Assembly (NCBI GenBank): GCA_964035545.1
Contig: OZ037769.1
Coordinates: 14,724,633 to 14,788,632 of the forward strand
Length of the DNA stretch: 64,000 nucleotides
Direction of reading: 5' to 3'
Source: Bugula neritina
Lineage: Eukaryota > Animalia > Bryozoa
Below the pieces are notes generated by a model. The model did not search any database. It saw only the letters and a list, made by a program, of their open reading frames with translations, and was not told where the DNA came from. The translations under genes and the position numbers were made by a program. Positions 4,282 through 14,115 of the stretch are shown piece after piece. Each line of letters opens with the position of its first letter. Within the stretch, counting starts at the first letter, position 1.

Positions 4282-7200
4282 CTAAAAGTCATCTTGTCTT
4301 TTGTGGCCATTAAACCCAGGAAACAGGTAAAGTTTTCTCATATGAGTGAGAGTATCCCAGACTACAACCAACTGTCCTCCACTCTCTAAATTTTTATCTA
4401 AACACAGTTTTCTAACTTTAGTCTGTACCTGAAGAATATTAGGCAAATAAACAGTAAAATTTTATTACTATTCTATACCAGATTATTCTAAATAACCAAT
4501 ACCTTCACTATAACAATACCTACACTATAACAATACCTTCACTATAACAATACCTACACTATAACAATACCTACACTATAACAATACCTTCACTATAACA
4601 ATACCTTCACTATAACAATACCTACACTATAACAATACCTTCACTATAACAATACCTACACTATAACAATACCTACACTATAACAATACCTACACTATAA
4701 CAATACCTTCACTATAACAATACCTTCACTATAACAATACCTACACTATAACAATACCTTCACTATAACAATACCTACACTATAACAATACCTACACTAT
4801 AACAATACCTTCACTATAACAATACCTACACTATAACAATACCTACACTATAACAATATCTTCACTGTAACAATATCTACACTATAACAATACCTACACT
4901 ATAACAATACCTTCACTATAACAATACCTTCACTATAACAATATAACAATACCTACACTATAACAATACCTACACTATAACAATACTTTCACTATAACAA
5001 TACCGTCACTATAACAATATAACAATACCTACACTATAACAATACCTACACTATAACAATACCTACACTATAACAATACTTTCACTATAACAATACCTAC
5101 ACTATAACAATACCTACACTATAACAATACCTTCACTATAACAATACCTTCACTATAACAATACCTTCGCTATAACAATACCTTCACTATAACAATACCT
5201 ACACTATAACAAAATTAAACTGTGAATACTCTATAACAAACTGTAAAATAATTATCAATATTTACTCCTAAAATTAGTAACGTTTGCCAACAACTAACAT
5301 TAATTTGTGCCATTTTCAATTTCATCAGTTCTCCATGCGTATAAGTGTAACAAAGTGCAATACATTCACCTGTTTAAATATGGTGTAGAGGTCATGGTGG
5401 CAGGCATGTTTATACATGGAGGATACAAGAGCTCTAACCATTAGAGATCCACACTCAGGGTGACTTTTTGATATGAATGCTACAAGCAGAATCAATCATA
5501 TAAATTATTCAACTATTAGAAATACAACTAGTTGACTAGTTATACAGTATAATATCATGAATACAGTAACTTGAATTCCATTACATGTGTGTTACTTACA
5601 CTCCATGCTAGATTTCACTACTAGCAGGTCATCATAGTTCAGTCTATTCATAGCCTCAGCATTTTTGTCTCCTGGAACTTTAGCAAGTGGAGGTGAGATA
5701 CTCTCCCCCTCCTTTTGTGATTCTCCAATATCAAACCTGTCTATACCTCTTTGGCCAAAATCACTCCTCTCTGTTAGAAACATAATAAAAAAAGATTATA
5801 TTCACTTCATATGATAAACATCAACAGTGTCAAATATGTAAGAGTTAATATAAATAATTGTGAAACTGGTTGTAAGTGAACATACTTCACCAAATACTCA
5901 ACAGTCAAGGGAACACATTCGAAAGTAACCACAAATGTTTTATAAACTGATTACCTCCACTACAAACTTCCAGTATAACAACCTTTGGTTTGCCAGCCAT
6001 TCCAGAGAAGTTCAAAGGGGTCAGAAGGTCATACACATCTGTTAGTTTAACTCGTTTCAAGTCTGTACCCAAGATGTAGTTGTTCAGCCCTCCATGAGTC
6101 ATGATAACCAACACATGACATCCCAAATCTTTGTGTTCCTCTTTTTTCACCTCAGATTTTACAGCAGACAACATCTCCTAAAACAGGAAGTGAAATATTG
6201 AAATTTGGATGGCAGAAATCCGATCTAAATTTGAAAGCTTCTTTAAAATTTATGACAACTCCTACTAGGTCTTTGAAAATTTAGCTAAACTAAAGTCACA
6301 TGAGGTGAAGAAATAACTTTTAAATCTCATTTACTTTAAACTCAATTTAATAATTTATGTTAAAGTAAAGACTTTGGCATTAATCAGTGCCAGTAAAACT
6401 ATTAATAAGCCAATTCTATTATAGAATATAAACTCATTCCTATTCTTAAGTCAAAATTAATAATAATAATAATCATGATATAACTCATTTGACTTGTTTA
6501 CTTTAAATAACATTTTATTTGAAGATGATTATTTATTAAATGGTCAACAAATGATGCTGGATTAACCCTCCAATTCAGTCTCCAGAGGCCTCAACAAAAA
6601 ACCTGGCCTTACACCTGTGAATCCTTACACCTGTAAACCCAGCCTTACACCTGTAAACCTTTACACCTGTAAACCTTTACACCTGTAAACCTTTACACCT
6701 GTAAACCTTTACACCTGTAAACCTTTACACCTGTAAATCTTTACACCTGTAAACCCTTACACCTCTAAACCCGTCCTTACACCTGCATGTAAACCCTTAT
6801 ACCAGGGGTGGGCAAATGGCGACCCACGGGCCACATCAGCCCCTCTTACTGTTTTAATCAGGCCTTCAGCCAATCACTAGCAATTCTAATATTTTCATTG
6901 GTTTTTTAATCATTCACAAAATGTGTGTACTAAGCAACACTGACCAATCATGAACGTGACTCATGAGAAGATTCTTGCCAATGTATATAGCTGTTAAAAC
7001 TAATGATCACGCTTCAGTTAGCGTAAGTATAGCAGCATTACAACTATAGTTATGTGATGTTGCTGAAACAGCAGTTAGCTTCTACACTTCACCAGTAACC
7101 AGTGAGAAATACCCTACATTAGCTAAACTGGGACTAAGAGCACTGGGCATATTTAGTTATAATTGAAGATTCGAATGCATGTTTTCTAGCATGAACCATA

Positions 7201-8289
7201 CAAAAAATAGTAATATGATCAATGAGCATCTGCAAGATTTGCTTCGAGTAGCCACACATGAACCCATTACAAGCAGTGACATTATTAATAGTGCTAATTG
7301 CTATTATGGCTACTAAAAGTGTATTTCATACTTCTCACTAATTATAGTACTATAAGTGTACCCAATAAACTTTTTGCTGCTTTTTTGCTTAGCGTAGGGC
7401 CACACTGTGCGTAATTTTGCAGGCGAAAACTTAAACCACAGGTAGAAAAGGCGTCCACTGCATGTATGCGTTGAAAAAATTATTGGAATTTGTCGCTCAG
7501 CATTTTGAACGCAAGTTCGAATCGTCTGTCGTCGCCACCTAATTGGCTGGTAGTTATTTAAAGAGCCCACTTTTCTTGATTTAGTGCTACATTCCAGTAG
7601 GTTGCATTTTATTGAAATCGAGTGCGATTTAAAAATGAAAACTCAATTTATCCAGCAGGTGTAGCCATAGCAACAAGGCGATCGGTAAAGTTAAACGCAA
7701 ATATTATTAGCTAGTAGTTTTTTGATTTCACTGATGCTACAGTGGACGCCTTTTCTACTTGTGGTTTAAATTTTTGCCTGCGGAAATGCGCACAGTGTGG
7801 CCTTAGGCTTAGTGAACTATATACAATTTGTTGGTAAATTGATAAACTGCCATATCTTTTATTCTTTATTTATACCCTCAGCTTTGAAAAAAGCAACTTA
7901 TATTTGCATTTGGTAATGCAGCATTGTATATCTTGAATTTACAGCAAACAAACCTGGCCTTTTTTACGCCTTAAATCTTGAGATCTGGCCCTATTTCAAA
8001 AACATTTGCCCATCCCTGCTTTACACCGCGTATTCTGTATACATATAGGCCTATAGAGTCTGTAAACTAACAGAGAAGTAGGTTTTTAACTTCATACGTG
8101 AACAACAACAAAACATACCTCAGCCTTCAGGTCTGTGTGTGTCACAACATCAAACTTGAGAGTTTTCAACATGGTGGACAAATTCTCTACATCCACATCT
8201 GAACCTTTCCTACACAAGTCGGGTCTCTTATCAAAGTTCATGTTGTTTATCATCAGAGCTCTTCCTCTTTTTCTAGTCATAGTAAATAC
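4282..8289 (-). CDS. Caspase (peptidase C14A) domain exons of the fusion gene
   Basis: p20: RGRALMINNMNF...CRKGSDVDVENLSTMLKTLKFDV, catalytic His in VIMTHG, GKPKVVILEVCSG at the QACxG position. p10: DDLLVVKSS...SFISKSHPECGSLMVRAL...QLVVVWDTLTHMRKLYLFPG, matching the caspase C-terminal TLxKxLYF motif. The last two exons (5479-5370, 4428-4282) are absent from the ORF track and were translated by hand. Confidence 0.92.
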
Positions 8290-11104
8290 CTGGATGGAAC
8301 AGAGAAACACTTGTTACTGGTGAACTAAACAACTGGCAAGGATAAATTAGACATTAGACATTAGACATTAAAAGTGATCACCTTGTCGGTATTTGAGAAC
8401 AGCTGTCGTATCTTCCGGTTATTGCTAGGATTCAGTGTGAGTCTTATAAACTTCATATTTTCAACTTCCGCTCTATCTGGGTACAGTTGCTCATCATCAT
8501 CAGAGAGATCACTGAGATCATCATTGGCTGTTATTGTGGAGGTCGGGAGATTTGATTGGCTACTGTTGGCAACTATATAAAGGACAAATTCATATCTCAT
8601 CATGGAATATAGGAAATGTGATATCACAATGATCGGCAAATTGGGACTCAGCTGCAATGTAGTAATATACGTTCATTACTTTACCAAATAAAGTTAAACT
8701 TTTAAAGAACATATTCTTGCACAAACTAGTAACTTGGTATTCACCAGAATTATAAGCTGATCTTCTTTGAACTCCTCGAAGACTCAGTTCACTCACAAAC
8801 TTCTCCAACTTATCAGCTTCTCTCTCAGACAATCTTTCACCTGAAATGTTGAAATACTTGAAAATATAATAAATAATTTCATCGTGCAATTTTTTTCTAG
8901 CCCTAATTATACCAAGGAATGTGGAGGATTAACTCAATTCAATTCTAAATAATGTGGTAAGTTGCAATGAAATAAAAGTTATTACACGCACTACACCATA
9001 ATGTAACCAAACATACATGGATAGAGAAGAGCACTTGGTATCTCCTCATCACCACACAGAGTAGTTGCAGATAAGTTACACAGTTTGGGCTTTGGCGTGG
9101 AATGTTTCAAGGAGCGAAGACACCACGGAGGATGGAGTACTTTCTTAGGACATGGAAGTCCTAGCAGAAGGCAGTGAGCACAGTAGCATGTAGTGACTGG
9201 TCTACTTGCTTTCCAGGTTTCTAGAACATGTCTAAGGATGTTGTTGTTGGTGGTGATGAGTCTCTCCCACATTCCGCTGATGTTGGCAGCATTAGATGAC
9301 ACGTGGAGTGACACTTTTCTAGATTTGTAGTCATGTACCAGCTGTGTGTAGATTCCATCTTGATAGACATTGGCTCCGTTTCTTCTCACTTTCATCACAG
9401 CAAACTCATCTGGAAACGATTCCAACAAACCGACCGTCATCTGGTGGTAGACATATTGTGGCAGGGCTAGACCATTGAACTGTGTCTCCACTTGAAGCAA
9501 CATGTCCTTGGGTGAGGAGTAGGAGGTGCTGTGGTAGTTTTTAGCATACTGAGGTACAATGAACCATGGCTCTTCAGACTCGCCATGTATTGGACCGTGC
9601 AGCAAACGAAATGTCTGGAGTAAGCAGACAGCAACATCTACATCCTTAGAGCTACGGAATGATGTCTCTTTTTCAATGAAATAAAAAAGAAGTGACTGCA
9701 TCATTAAACCAGTGTCAGTGAAATTACTGACAGACCTCTCAAAGTCTTGCTTCTCAAAACGTAGTTCAGTTTGTGTATAGTATGGCTGGAACTGGTCAAC
9801 TCTACTCTGCCATATGTTAGGATCATGATGATACAAGACACATAGAAGTTTGGTGATTCCTGAAATCTTGTGGAATATGTATGGCCGGAGGGAGTTGATG
9901 TCTTTATACCACAAGACTTTGCCGCAGTCATGCATGTATGTGAGGATTATGTCCAGCTGACCTGACTCAATGTGTTGAAGTTCTGTTTGTACGTACTTTA
10001 GTGTCTCATCAAAGGTACTGTACACAGAGGGAAAGGACAGCACTTTTTCATTCACTTCCTCCCAGACAAAAGGTAAAGGTTTCAAGAAATGTTGACTGCT
10101 TTGAAGAAGAGACTTCTTGATCAGGTCAAACACCTCATACTTATCATCCTTTCCCAGCTCATAAATGTCCTCACCAAGAAAGACTCCTCCGGCTGATTCA
10201 CTCAAATGTTTGATTCGAGCAAATTCTCCACCCAATGCTTCCTCTTCCCTAATCATCTCCTCACACAGTTTATTTGAAGTTTCTAGGAAGCTTTTCTGAA
10301 ACTGTTGGAATTCTGCACTCTGAAACTTATCTTTATGTGTGAAGATAAGTTTTGGTGAACCTAGAGTTGGGTTAGCCAGGTAGAGGTGAGACATGTAATC
10401 AAAGGCTAATCTTCTGACAGCTTCTCTGGGTGTTGATTCAATTGAAATCTCTTTGTATTGTTCCATGTTGACTACTATGACTGGAATGCAGTTCTGTCTC
10501 AGTGTCAGTTGATAGGTGATATGGTAGACCTCTTGGCCTCCCATATCAATGAGACGGAGTACTGTACCATCCACCTTCACCTCTTCAACATTAAACACTT
10601 TTGTTGTCTCATCGTTCACAGCATCTGGCCCTCTGTTGGTCAGAACTCTCTTTCTGTCAGCATTCTGTAATGTTTCAATTAGACTGGTCTTCCCAGCCAT
10701 TGTATTACCTAGCACAGCTATAGTAGCAAATGGTAGACTTCTACCAGCACCTTTAGCCAAGTCTGTGTAGTATTGTCTCACAGCATCCAGTCCTCTCCTA
10801 CATACTTCTAGTGGAGGAGAGGTGAGAGCATCACAATATCTAACATGCAGTGTGTGAAGTTGAGTTAGCTGTAGTATCTCAGGATCTAAGGATGTCAGGG
10901 AGTAATTAAGAGATATATCCAGTTCCTGCAGACTACTCAGTGAGTACACAGGAGATGGTAACCTGGTGAAGTTGTTGTATGATATGGTCAGTTTCTCTAA
11001 CTTCTGTAGACTCTGCATGCTAATAAATATGAAATATATATTTGAGGTTTCAAAAATGGGGTTTGCACAATAATAAATATTGAAGTTCCATAATACAATT
11101 CATA

Positions 11105-11161
<57 letters not shown>

Positions 11162-14115
11162 AGTGTGCAATGTATTGTATAAAATTTATAGCTCCATTAG
11201 GACTTATAGTCCCAATTATTTAATACAAAAGAGCAGGTAAATGATACAATACATCACTAGGTAGCAGTGGATTGACTACCATTATATTATATTTCAGTAT
11301 AACATCATAATACGTCTCAGTATAATATTATAATATATCTCAGTATAATATTATAATATACCTTAGTATAACGTTATAATATATTTCAGTATAACATCAT
11401 AATACGTCTCAGTATAATATTATAATATATCTCAGTATAATATTATAATATACCTTAGTATAACGTTATAATATATTTCAGTATAACATTATAATATATC
11501 TCAGTATAACATTATAATATAACTCAGTATAACAATCTGTGAGAGTTTCATAATTACAGTTATAAAAATGATTTTTTTGTTAGTTGTCTTCTATTAATTA
11601 ACTTCTCTAAAAAGTTACAATATACAACTCTAATATAAGTATCAATATACTATCATTTTGTAGCAAAAAAATTAATATTTAATAAACTTATTAGAGTAAT
11701 AGGTGAGAAGTTGCCGTACCCTTTCTATCTGAGTATATCTAATAGAATAGAGTGGTTGTCTTATGACATCATATTCACAGAGTCTAGTTGACTCAATAAA
11801 GATAGTGCAGATAACTTCATAATGTATAATATAATACATACCTGTTTGGTAGAATTGGAAGTTTACAGTCTCCAATGCCCAACTGTCTCAATGATAGTAA
11901 GGATGTGAATATATTGTCAGGTAGACCTTCAGATAGATTATTCCCTGGTATATCCAATACCTCAAGATTCTTCAGTGAAGATACGCTGTAACATAGCATA
12001 CAGGTGTGAAATGTTGTATATCAAAAAATACCATATGCACTTCTATAACCTCATCATATCTATAAAATATTTATAACTTATACTTATTACAGTACCATTC
12101 TACACTATAATAAAATAATATGCACCTGTTTGGTAGAGTTGACAGTTTACAGTGACTCATGTTCAACTCTCTCAATGATAGTAAGGATGTGAATATATTG
12201 TCAGGTAGACCTTCAGATAGGTTATTCCCTAATATATCCAATACCTCAAGATTCTTCAGTGAAGATATGCTGTAATATAACACATAGGTGTGAAATGTTG
12301 TATATCAAAATATACCTTATACACTTCTACATAATCATATCTATAATATATTTATAACTTATACTTATTACAGTACCATTCTACAATATGATGTAATACA
12401 CACACACCTGTTTGGTAGAGTTGGTAGTTCACAGTAATTCATGTCCAACTCTCTCAATGATAGTAAGGATGTGAATATATTGTCAGGTAGACCTTCAGAT
12501 AGGTTCTTCCCTGATATATCCAATACCTCAAGATTCTTCAGTGAAGATATGCTGTTACATAACACAAAGGTGTGAAATGTTGTAAATAAAAAATACCATA
12601 TACTTCTACCCAATCATATCAACAATATATTTATAACTTATACTTATTACAACACCATTCTACAATATAATATAACACACACACACACCTGTTTGGTAGA
12701 GTTGGTAGTTTACAGTACATCATGTCCAACTCTCTCAATGATAATAAGGATGTGAATATATTGTCAGGTAGACCTTCAGATAGGTTATTATATGATATAT
12801 TCAATACCTCAAGATTCTTCAGTGAAGATATGCTGTAATATAACACACATGCAGGTGTGACAGTATTCAACTCTATAATATAATTGTCACATATTAGTAT
12901 GTTTGAATGAGATTAACTGACATTAAATTGAATAATAAATAGAAATGCAATAAACCAGGTAAATAATACAACAGTTGTTACTAAAGCTAGTGTTATTGTG
13001 AGGGGAGATTACTCCACATTCTACTACAAGATGATATGTCACTTATTATTAAATATAGTTTTATATTATCATGCAACATTAGTATACCTGGTCCAGTCAA
13101 CATTACTGTCTACTCCAGATACCCTCAGATATGTGAGATGAGGAAACAGTTTGTTGATATTTGGAGGAATGTCATCATCCAGTCTAACATGAGTAACTGT
13201 ATGGTGTCTACTTTTATCTTTGATCTCACCTATAGTGTAGGATGTAGTCCTATTCCTCATCCACTCATCACCAGTTCCATCTATAATGGATGTGTTGAAC
13301 CACACCCTATACTTCTCTACAAAATATGCACCACTATATGAATAGTAACATGGATATCAAATAACAAAATATATGTCTCAACACTATATAAACAGTATTG
13401 AATTAATTAACTTTGCATGGTTCTGTACAGCACGCGTTATAATAATTATGTTATAATTAGTCATAGAGTAGGCTATAATATAATGTAATATAATATAATG
13501 TATAATAGAGTATGATATAAGTTAGTCTAATAGTTATAGAATATAGTATAATATAAGTCAGTATAATAGTTATATACATTATACTCAGTATATAACATTA
13601 TAAAATGAACACAAGCAATGTAATACTCAGCTGGTATCAAAACAGTGGTAGGTGCAGTAATGAAAAAAGTGAAAAAAGCCTGTGCTTCTAGATCAGAAAT
13701 GTAGCAAAAGAAGTTGTATTTTCATGAGAATTTAAACAGGATAAAATTTAAAGAATTTAAGCTATCTCAGTTTCTCCACTATTGCACCATATTTTCAGAA
13801 CATAAAAATATATAATTTCTGTAGTCACTATAGTTGCAGTATTTGTAATCACATGGTTTACTAACTTATCAGAGACTGACCTGAAGATAGAGGTGGTGGT
13901 TGAGGTGGTGGTTGAAGTGGTGGTTGAAGTGGAGGTGGAGGTTGAGGTGGCGGTGGAGGTTGAGGTGGAGGTTGAGGTTGAAATGGAGGTGGAAGTGGAG
14001 GTGGAAGTAGAGGTGGACCTGGAGGTGTAGGTTGAGGGACAGACTTGCGTTGACCCATTCTGTAGTCTCTGGGTACAGCTATACTCACATCTTTATTCTC
14101 ATCTGTAACAACCAT
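4282..14115 (-). CDS. Pro-rich-LRR-ROC-COR-caspase fusion protein (Roco-family GTPase with C-terminal peptidase C14 domain), about 1383 aa
   Basis: Coding exons (minus strand): 14115-13881, 13316-13088, 12832-12689, 12551-12408, 12269-12126, 11985-11842, 11019-9017, 8840-8745, 8572-8382, 8289-8119, 6177-5955, 5770-5600, 5479-5370, 4428-4282 (14 segments in this list, counting the four LRR cassettes separately). Every intron is GT-AG with matching phase (1,2,2,2,2,2,1,1,0,0,1,1,0). Total 4152 nt = 1384 codons ending in TAG. Domain motifs are given in the sub-features. Confidence 0.85.
4497..5210. repeat. 17-bp minisatellite (ACTATAACAATACCT[A/T]C), about 40 copies, in last intron of the fusion gene
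   Basis: Direct head-to-tail tandem units with two alternating variants and no spacers. Confidence 0.95.
6608..6790. repeat. 16-bp minisatellite (ACACCTGTAAACCTTT)
   Basis: About 10 tandem, partly degenerate copies immediately left of the hAT element. Confidence 0.9.
6803..8018 (+). mobile_element. Non-autonomous hAT (Buster/Charlie-like) DNA transposon in a caspase intron
   Basis: TIRs CAGGGGTGGGCAAATG (6803) and CATTTGCCCATCCCTG (ends 8018) match 15/16. Flanking 8-mers CCTTATAC and CTTTACAC match 6/8. The internal remnant at ~7100-7255 translates as SEKYPTLAKLGLRALGIFSYN*RFECMFSSMNHTKN...NEHLQDLLRVAT, resembling the hAT C-terminal dimerisation domain. Confidence 0.8.
7392..7808. mobile_element. 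PIF/Harbinger-type MITE nested inside the hAT element
   Basis: About 70-bp imperfect TIRs (GCGTAGGGCCACACTGTGCG...AGAAAAGGCGTCCACTG and CAGTGGACGCCTTTTCT...CGCACAGTGTGGCCTTAGGC), flanked by TTA at 7389-7391 and 7809-7811. Confidence 0.8.
9017..11019 (-). CDS. Large exon encoding last LRRs, ROC GTPase and COR domain
   Basis: LRRs (LEKLTISYNNF, LQELDISLN, LHTLHVRYC), Roco hinge LTSPPLEVCRRGLDAVRQYY, P-loop GNTMAGKTSL, switch Thr (DETTKV), G3 DMGGQE, G4 THKD, COR motifs LPFVWEEV, LTYMHDCGKVLWY, WFIVP, LPQYVYHQM, and a C-terminal CYCAHC cluster. Confidence 0.92.
11107..11158. repeat. (TA)n microsatellite
   Basis: Pure TA run. Confidence 0.95.
11281..11533. repeat. 23-bp minisatellite (CAGTATAAYATTATAATATATCT) with a 92-bp higher-order duplication
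   Basis: Variant CAGTATAACATCATAATACGTCT recurs at 11295 and 11387, a spacing of 4 x 23 bp. Confidence 0.85.
11842..11985 (-). CDS. LRR cassette exon D (144 nt, phase 2-2)
   Basis: tacag|...AG|gtatgt; encodes SVSSLKNLEVLDIPGNNLSEGLPDNIFTSLLSLRQLGIGDCKLPILPN. Confidence 0.9.
12126..12269 (-). CDS. LRR cassette exon C (144 nt, phase 2-2)
   Basis: tacag|...AG|gtgcat; encodes SISSLKNLEVLDILGNNLSEGLPDNIFTSLLSLRELNMSHCKLSTLPN. Confidence 0.9.
12408..12551 (-). CDS. LRR cassette exon B (144 nt, phase 2-2)
   Basis: aacag|...AG|gtgtgt; encodes SISSLKNLEVLDISGKNLSEGLPDNIFTSLLSLRELDMNYCELPTLPN. Confidence 0.9.
12689..12832 (-). CDS. LRR cassette exon A (144 nt, two LRRs, phase 2-2)
   Basis: tacag|C ATA TCT...CCA AAC AG|gtgtgt; encodes SISSLKNLEVLNISYNNLSEGLPDNIFTSLLSLRELDMMYCKLPTLPN. 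Confidence 0.9.
13881..14115 (-). CDS. First coding exon of the fusion gene, polyproline-rich
   Basis: ATG at 14115 lies just downstream of an acceptor (tgtttag, ~14134). Encodes MVVTDENKDVSIAVPRDYRMGQRKSV followed by a ~50-aa P/Q/L tract. Donor TCA G|gtcagt is phase 1 and in frame with exon 13316-13088. Confidence 0.7.

Follow-up and report, generated by a model that had tools for sequence, protein, structure and literature searches.

How does a tandem array of nearly identical leucine-rich repeat (LRR) exons change in the course of evolution, and what might such change serve? The question is raised by a locus of the bryozoan Bugula neritina, in the 64,000-nt stretch of DNA analyzed here (contig OZ037769.1 of NCBI GenBank assembly GCA_964035545.1, positions 14,724,633 to 14,788,632 of the forward strand; hereafter the window), where four cassette exons lie within a gene of the layout LRR-Roc-COR-caspase. 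An original prediction, made by a model from the letters of this stretch, saw in these exons a recognition repertoire generated by unequal crossing-over, exon shuffling or alternative splicing. Our analysis favors, with a probability of roughly 0.7, the reading that the cassette is a unit of unequal exchange and that, together with a diversified LRR surface, it would form part of a germline receptor repertoire of ROCO-caspase genes; germline diversification is supported by the comparison of paralogous sequences, whereas alternative splicing is not supported, the contigs that suggested it being those of paralogues.

The exons form a single tandem array at 11836-12847 (period 281, 3.6 copies, 88% matches and a score of 1563 in Tandem Repeats Finder), which is composed as follows, in the order of transcription:

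12689..12832, minus strand: cassette exon 1, 144 nt, two LRRs, phase 2-2; protein ISSLKNLEVLNISYNNLSEGLPDNIFTSLLSLRELDMMYCKLPTLPN; LRR_1 27.7 bits, LRR_8 28.0 bits; RNA joint 12832/13088
12552..12688, minus strand: intron between cassettes 1 and 2, 137 nt
12408..12551, minus strand: cassette exon 2, 144 nt, two LRRs, phase 2-2; DISGK / ELDMNYCE variant; RNA joint 12269/12408
12270..12407, minus strand: intron between cassettes 2 and 3, 138 nt; removed by splicing in an RNA contig
12126..12269, minus strand: cassette exon 3, 144 nt, two LRRs, phase 2-2; DILGN / ELNMSHCK variant; RNA joints at both ends
11986..12125, minus strand: intron between cassettes 3 and 4, 140 nt
11842..11985, minus strand: cassette exon 4, 144 nt, two LRRs, phase 2-2; DIPGN / QLGIGDCK, the most divergent of the four

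The periods between successive cassettes are 281, 282 and 284 nt, which bears out the predicted four exon-plus-intron units with a period of 281-284 bp, and a script finds AG before and GT after each exon. Each cassette begins at its 5' end with the third base of a codon and ends at its 3' end with two bases (AG) of the next codon, and the flanking introns are all of phase 2; the same phase is found in the upstream exon (...ACC AG/gt at 13088) and in the downstream exon (ag/C ATG CAG at 11018). The AG/GT flanks and the codon phase thus agree with the claim that the exons are exactly 144 nt long and of phase 2-2. Since the introns are all of phase 2 and the exons are multiples of three, the gain or loss of a unit leaves the reading frame intact. 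Furthermore, the three inter-cassette introns are homologous from end to end with each other and with the 127-132 nt introns of an array at C5:17.307 Mb (family matches fall on assembly pieces C1-C9), and the 5' and 3' intron ends are conserved between loci on C1 and C5; the duplicating unit is, therefore, the exon plus its intron.

Each 48-residue cassette keeps a 24-residue LRR spacing, with LEVLxIxxNxL at residues 7-17 and LRELxMxxCxL at residues 32-42, and the LRR_1 scores of the four cassettes (23.8, 27.7, 27.3 and 20.9 bits) are all above the Pfam cutoff of 20.6, the cutoff for the LRR_8 score given above being 27. The scaffold SSLKNLEVL...NLSEGLPDNIFTSLLSLR is identical in all four cassettes, amino-acid replacements fall in 13 codons, and the variant strings NISYN/DISGK/DILGN/DIPGN and ELDMMYCK/ELDMNYCE/ELNMSHCK/QLGIGDCK, as well as the identity of the scaffold, were reproduced by translation just as they had been predicted. 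The synonymous differences, put at about four in that prediction, number exactly four (codon 16 once, codon 30 once and codon 42 twice).

The RNA evidence consists of short Logan contigs mapped at a likeness of at least 90%, so that transcripts of paralogues also land on the array. RNA depth is high on the exons and about zero over 11165-11768, within the 823-nt intron that follows the last cassette, and the contig joints with GT..AG ends on the minus strand fall exactly at 12269/12408, 12832/13088 and 11019/12126, the first of them joining cassette 3 directly to cassette 2. On the strength of this exon depth, the empty intron and the exact joints, the cassettes are genuine exons, spliced in a family of LRR-Roc-COR-caspase transcripts.

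The residues that set the cassettes apart were examined in a codon set of 65, and then 84, unique cassettes, with changes counted by codon parsimony on a single tree. Most codons are near-invariant, third positions included, while 12-15 kinds of residue occur at positions 14, 38 and 39, and 5-9 kinds at positions 11, 34, 36 and 41. The synonymous rate on the tree is 2.6 changes per site, and at these seven codons the nonsynonymous changes per site amount to 3.3-7.5 times that rate in the set of 84 cassettes (Poisson P from 1e-6 to 8e-26, all passing Bonferroni correction). Taken against their own synonymous changes, the seven codons have a local omega of 3.1, compared to 0.63 for the other 40 codons, and for a class of positions defined in advance (x2, x3, x5, x7 and x8 of xxLxLxx, taken in both repeats) the pairwise dN/dS (nonsynonymous over synonymous divergence) is 2.36, compared to 0.77 for the rest. 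The site-wise dN/dS check that had been proposed thus finds elevated values at the x-positions of the paralogue cassettes, the seven codons being x5 and x8 of the first repeat (LRR-A) and x3, x5, x7, x8 and x10 of the second (LRR-B) in the motif LxxLxLxxNxL.

In standard LRR geometry, the beta-strand lines the concave face of the solenoid, and the seven sites lie on and just after that strand. An AF2 model of a single cassette, built from an alignment of 49 sequences, predicts strands at residues 9-11 and 34-36 with a confidence (mean pLDDT 64.8, pTM 0.38) that is low, sufficient to place the strands and insufficient for a surface map. The proposed mapping of variable residues onto a predicted structure therefore succeeds insofar as the strands agree with the sites, and stops short of a map of the surface. 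The variable residues are likely binding-face positions.

As cassette synonymous sites may be constrained or homogenized, divergence of the adjacent introns and of the Roc-COR exon was added as a yardstick. At the seven codons, dN is 0.59-0.61 and their own dS is 0.20-0.22, with a dS of 0.07-0.08 for the cassettes overall; within arrays, the mismatch is 9-17% per aligned site in introns, 29-37% of nucleotides in the seven codons and 2.4-6% in the rest of the exon (12.3%, 33.3% and 4.3%, respectively, in the array of the window). The dN of the seven codons is thus about 7-8 times the cassette dS, 2.8 times the local dS, 3.5-6 times the intron divergence and 1.9 times the Roc-COR dS. These comparisons support diversifying selection on the seven codons, which change faster than every neutral yardstick used, and they place the variation on the x-positions of LxxLxLxxN/CxL, where it had been predicted to center.

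To follow the number of units, we fetched the 10 kb upstream of ten paralogous Roc-COR exons, which hold 51 cassettes. Nine of the fetched arrays are uninterrupted series of 144-nt cassettes with AG/GT flanks and open frames, lying between a homologue of the upstream exon and the final exon; the upstream-exon homologue (83-90% identity) stands directly before the cassettes in these 9 of the 10 paralogues, and the tenth has at least 5 cassettes, its upstream exon lying beyond the fetched stretch. The complete arrays, including that of the window gene (n = 10), contain 2, 2, 3, 4 (window), 4, 4, 5, 8, 9 and 9 cassettes, and the count is 2 in the closest paralogue (89% identity) and 9 in the next (87%). 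One pair of genes, at C1:34.23 and C1:34.30 Mb, arose by recent duplication (Roc-COR dS of 0.031), and their units pair one-to-one with 98-100% identity in exons and 96-99% in introns, with the exception of an f/g pair in the one that faces three f/g-type units in the other, the second gene (34.30 Mb) having one unit extra. This difference is a gain or loss of a single unit and matches the prediction of unequal crossing-over. The view of the cassette as a frame-neutral module that can be added or lost thus holds both across paralogues, with 2-9 units each, and between recent duplicates one unit apart.

In a comparison of eleven genes, cassettes from one gene differ by a dS of 0.074 and those from different genes by 0.083, and this divergence shows no correspondence with the dS of the Roc-COR exons of the same genes (mean 0.32, range 0.03-0.49). 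The cassettes, as judged from these divergences, behave as one well-mixed pool across loci. Given that cassette dS is alike within and between genes while Roc-COR dS averages 0.32, the uniformity of the pool needs either exchange between genes, by gene conversion or unequal crossing-over, or strong constraint at the nucleotide level, and the data do not separate the two. The exon shuffling of the original prediction, accordingly, is in keeping with the pooled dS insofar as exchange between genes would produce it, and nucleotide constraint fits equally well.

The gene that carries the array comprises the following further features:

13088..13316, minus strand: upstream exon, which opens the LRR arm and ends in phase 2 (...IPPNINKLFPHLTYLRVSGVDSNVDWT); RNA joint at 13088, loose RNA end at 13316
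11019..11841, minus strand: intron after the last cassette, 823 nt; 'type B' 5' end common to paralogues; holds (TA)27 and a 23-nt tandem repeat
8991..11018, minus strand: large exon with the last approximately three LRRs, the Roc GTPase (P-loop GNTMAGKTS) and a COR-like region; starts in phase 2; splice donor at the 3' end near 9015, still within the open frame
8092..8310, minus strand: N-terminal part of the caspase, PF00656, E 5.1e-09
5905..6174, minus strand: caspase catalytic exon with His (THG) and Cys (EVCSGG), PF00656, E 1.6e-09

The Roc domain in the open reading frame (ORF) 8991-11018 scores 30.7 bits with PF08477 (cutoff 27). Sequence searches were made one exon at a time. The Roc-COR exon finds its best match among the named proteins of the database in an MFHAS1 homologue from Watersipora subatra, another bryozoan (33% identity), and the closer relatives (60-86% identity) are unnamed JGI metagenome proteins. 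Among solved structures, the best relative of the cassette profile is RSU1 (7lt8, E 1e-12), which aligns repeat for repeat, with VLR modules also among the matches (2o6q, E 6e-10). The motif of the caspase exon, THG ... EVCSGG, stands in place of the usual QACxG pentapeptide.

Further upstream, a proline-rich open frame at 13861-14115 on the minus strand (PPPLPPPFQPQPPPQ...) is made of 12-, 18- and 30-nt repeats. The loose RNA end at 13316 runs into GAGG-rich (proline-coding) letters that resemble this frame, another at about 9015 running into the next downstream exon. As the RNA at 13316 continues in letters similar to those of 13861-14115, this frame is probably the N-terminal exon of the cassette gene. 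In those N-terminal exons that were read, we saw neither a signal peptide nor a membrane segment, and the protein looks cytosolic.

How large is the family to which this gene belongs? A cassette search of the species' own genome gave 234 candidates, of which 40 were scored; all 40 show at least 92% identity, and most of them lie on C1, clustered at 33.85-34.97 Mb, and on C5. The Roc-COR exon gave 162 candidates, and nearly all of the 66 that were scored are intact, falling into a closer group (76-89% identity; C1, C5 and C3) and a distant one (64-67%; mostly C6). The caspase catalytic exon has 132 matches, and, when the lists are compared by eye, 28 of the 29 closest Roc-COR paralogues prove to have such an exon on their own strand, 1.2-5 kb further downstream. 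The LRR-Roc-COR-caspase layout is thus shared by a family of more than 100 genes, and the proposed wiring of the LRR arm to a caspase is upheld to the extent that both parts lie in one gene with Roc-COR, here as in these 28 paralogues, the catalysis itself being predicted from sequence. The genome note PMC11480708 describes an assembly of 216.00 Mb and nine chromosomes; it was the sole match on B. neritina in our literature search, which found no paper on ROCO-caspase or cassette LRR genes in bryozoans.

Some observations concern the wider family. The distant group forms a second cluster at C6:2.5-6.3 Mb with at least 35 Roc-COR exons, 64-67% identical to that of the window, which constitutes a separate subfamily; several of the caspase-exon matches in this cluster contain one in-frame stop, which may represent an intron or a pseudogene. 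The closest Roc-COR paralogues have two caspase exon types, 85-93% and 41-46% identical to that of the window, and the great difference between the two suggests that output domains have been exchanged or have diverged within the subfamily. Finally, a 20,290-nt host-derived contig (L041) from JGI metagenome 3300002729 carries a Roc-COR exon with 83% DNA identity to that of the window and, about 320 nt upstream of it, one 144-nt cassette with AG/GT before the contig ends, too short a stretch for units to be counted; with this exon and cassette, the ROCO-caspase family is present in another sample or lineage.

Taking these results together, we propose that the four exons are tandem copies of one exon-plus-intron unit encoding two 24-residue LRRs, and that they would form the expandable middle of the LRR arm in a putatively cytosolic LRR-Roc-COR-caspase protein. 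Unequal crossing-over would add or remove two LRRs at a time while keeping both the frame and the register of the solenoid, and such gain or loss has occurred repeatedly in the family. The scaffold, synonymous sites included, is kept near-uniform, probably by gene conversion or unequal exchange combined with purifying selection, whereas the seven codons on and just after the two beta-strands would be driven apart by diversifying selection. The outcome would be a repertoire encoded in the germline, with more than 100 receptors that differ in LRR surface and in the length of the arm, in which a ligand on the concave face may release the Roc-COR switch and thereby activate the fused caspase. Such a protein could serve as a one-chain sensor, switch and executioner in immunity or cell death.

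Several points weigh against this proposal. The cassette synonymous sites evolve more slowly than the adjacent introns, and the depressed dS could account for part of the dN/dS signal, while recombination between cassettes inflates the homoplasy counts on a single tree. Positions E8, V9 and R33, also expected on the concave face, are invariant, such that only part of the face varies. Many of the RNA contigs on the array derive from paralogues, and the Pfam COR model PF16095 has no match at E <= 0.01 on the ORF of the window, although two homologues (P0032 and P0034, with 38-42% identity over 98-99% of the query) do carry it. We note, in addition, that the function is one we infer solely from architecture and evolutionary pattern.

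Alternative readings differ from the one above in where the variety would arise. If cassettes were skipped in combinations by alternative splicing, one gene would yield arms of varied length and surface within an individual, as reported for the LRR exons of Ectocarpus ROCOs (PMC11378527); the phase 2-2 symmetry would keep every skip in frame, and the contigs do show skip-like joints from the final exon to cassette 3 (no cassette 4) and from cassette 3 to the upstream exon (no cassettes 1 and 2), along with a non-collinear joint, 12832->12126, with the order cassette 3, then cassette 1. However, the skip-joint contigs that reach a neighboring exon have about 10 mismatches in 140 nt (about 93% identity), and the reversed order cannot be produced by linear splicing of the window gene; these contigs are, therefore, transcripts of paralogues that map best to this array, and the joints are not attributable to skipping in the window gene. 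Neighboring cassettes are, moreover, seen joined to each other (12269/12408), and the phasing of isoforms is beyond the reach of short contigs. The alternative splicing put forward in the original prediction is thus not supported by these joints, and we consider it unlikely. Near-identical cassettes that form one shared pool, with hypervariable codons at the binding face and a synonymous divergence uncoupled from that of the genes, would also be expected if somatic cells rearranged or converted the DNA, as lampreys do with their VLRs, giving cell-specific receptors, but all 51 cassettes at the ten paralogue loci are complete AG/GT exons in intact genes, between the same two flanking exons. As the germline assembly already encodes the diversity and no result points to somatic change, we regard this as extremely improbable. 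The frame-neutral design, the mixed cassette pool and the skip-like RNA joints leave some narrow room for a broader combinatorial use within the individual, in which regulated skipping or exchange among more than 100 loci would give varied receptors per cell or zooid; we hold it to be rather unlikely, but, if true, it would give a lophotrochozoan an anticipatory repertoire based on a Roco GTPase and not on an NLR or immunoglobulin.

Other readings accept the germline array and assign it a different task. The protein could be an ordinary adaptor with an RSU1- or MFHAS1-like LRR arm, in which an unconstrained surface and concerted evolution mimic positive selection, in line with RSU1 as the best solved relative and MFHAS1 as the best named homologue, and with a cassette dS below that of introns and Roc-COR, which inflates dN/dS, and recombination, which inflates homoplasy. 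Neutral sites, however, should not exceed the neutral yardsticks, and the dN of about 0.6 at the seven codons is greater than both the intron divergence (0.09-0.17) and the mean Roc-COR dS of 0.32; up to 15 different residues occur at one position, and a clustered family whose intact copies exceed 100 and vary in repeat number is atypical of housekeeping adaptors, so that an adaptor role, too, seems to us distinctly doubtful. The same device could also sense self and non-self in colony fusion or rejection, or genome conflict, and not pathogens: bryozoans are colonial, allo-incompatibility tied to cell death is discussed for them in the introduction to PMC8195603, and a polymorphic, fast-evolving receptor coupled to a caspase would fit. 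With a protein that looks cytosolic and begins with a proline-rich frame, while the known animal allorecognition receptors are surface proteins, we judge this to be a slim prospect, and return to the reading of a germline receptor repertoire for comparison with known systems.

The closest parallel is with the LRR-ROCO genes of brown algae (Ectocarpus and Saccharina), which have 72-bp phase-2 LRR exons, exon shuffling and positive selection (PMC3341825, PMC11378527), so that the exon-per-LRR ROCO precedent cited in the original prediction is real. Both systems share the LRR-Roc-COR order, tandem symmetric phase-2 LRR exons, exon numbers that vary among paralogues, positive selection on exposed LRR residues and candidacy as immune receptors. 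The bryozoan exon, however, is 144 nt long and encodes two LRRs, like a fusion of two 72-nt repeats, compared to 72 nt and one LRR in the algae, and the bryozoan genes reside in an animal host, have an attached caspase and belong to a much larger family. Since the nearest named relative is the animal MFHAS1, the cassette organization is likely of independent origin. MFHAS1/MASL1 and RSU1, which are cytosolic LRR proteins of the Ras group, themselves resemble the window gene in LRR-Roc-COR order (MFHAS1) and LRR subtype (RSU1), but the vertebrate genes are single-copy and lack cassette arrays, hypervariable sites and a caspase.

Plant NLR and R-gene LRRs are likewise encoded by clustered germline families with diversifying selection on xxLxLxx, repeat-number change by unequal crossing-over together with gene conversion, and a nucleotide switch between sensor and output; the bryozoan genes differ from plant NLRs in having a Roc-COR GTPase in place of an NB-ARC STAND ATPase as the switch, a fused caspase output and uniform cassette exons. 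The VLRs of lampreys and hagfish are also made of near-identical LRR modules with variation at concave-face positions, but they arise somatically, when donor cassettes that lack splice sites are added to a gene that is incomplete, whereas the bryozoan cassettes are spliced exons of complete germline genes for cytosolic-looking proteins. No VLR-type donor cassettes were found among the intact cassettes (66 from the first 30 loci and 51 from the ten 10-kb loci), all of which have AG/GT and sit between conserved flanking exons of complete genes, and the lamprey analogy drawn earlier thus applies to the location of the variable residues and not to the mechanism. Arthropod Dscam1 offers tandem, frame-compatible duplicated exons that encode variants of one structural module, but these are mutually exclusive, with one used per cluster, whereas the bryozoan neighbors are spliced together and all are needed for the solenoid; a Dscam-type mutually exclusive array is ruled out by the contig that joins cassettes 3 and 2.

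Large germline families of fast-evolving intracellular LRR receptors occur in plants (NLRs) and in some invertebrates (NLR and TLR expansions), and brown algae are, to our knowledge, the only group in which LRR-ROCO receptors built from cassettes have been described. In the present case, an animal appears to have assembled an NLR-like arsenal around a different switch, Roc-COR, with a caspase in the same chain, and the modular exon design makes both the length and the surface of the sensor easy to change. To this picture, the window gene contributes a subfamily with 144-nt exons, duplicates that differ by a single unit and evidence that the cassette scaffold is pooled. If the function is confirmed, this would bring to three the ways in which eukaryotes couple recognition to cell death; it would also represent a striking convergence with brown algae, down to phase-2 exons in multiples of 72 nt, and provide a compact system in which to study signaling from LRR arm to output in Roco GTPases, to which the Parkinson's protein LRRK2 belongs. 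The questions that arise are which ligands select the seven positions, whether inter-locus exchange upholds the scaffold, and whether diversity arises within the lifetime of a colony.

A few minor observations concern the introns. In the flanks of 40 cassette loci, introns downstream of a cassette open with 40-50 nt of one of two conserved types, common to C1 and C5 loci, type one being 'gtgtgtattatattatagtgtagaatgatactgtaata...' and type two '...acattatgaagttatctgcactatctttattgag'; the latter (window 11792-11841) follows the last cassette here, but is also found within the array at C1:34.23 Mb. The RNA fold of the short introns is mildly more stable than that of shuffled sequences (z from -0.6 to -2.7), the sequences being too alike for covariation. 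In DNA run X14, perhaps the assembly's own sample, joints within the array resemble repeat collapses. Within the 823-nt intron, (TA)27 lies at 11107-11159, and the 23-nt repeat at 11280-11534 is present in 11 copies with a 92-nt higher-order unit and 96% matches. The depth of X14 contigs on the repeat of this intron is very high, and the repeat is, therefore, probably dispersed in the genome.

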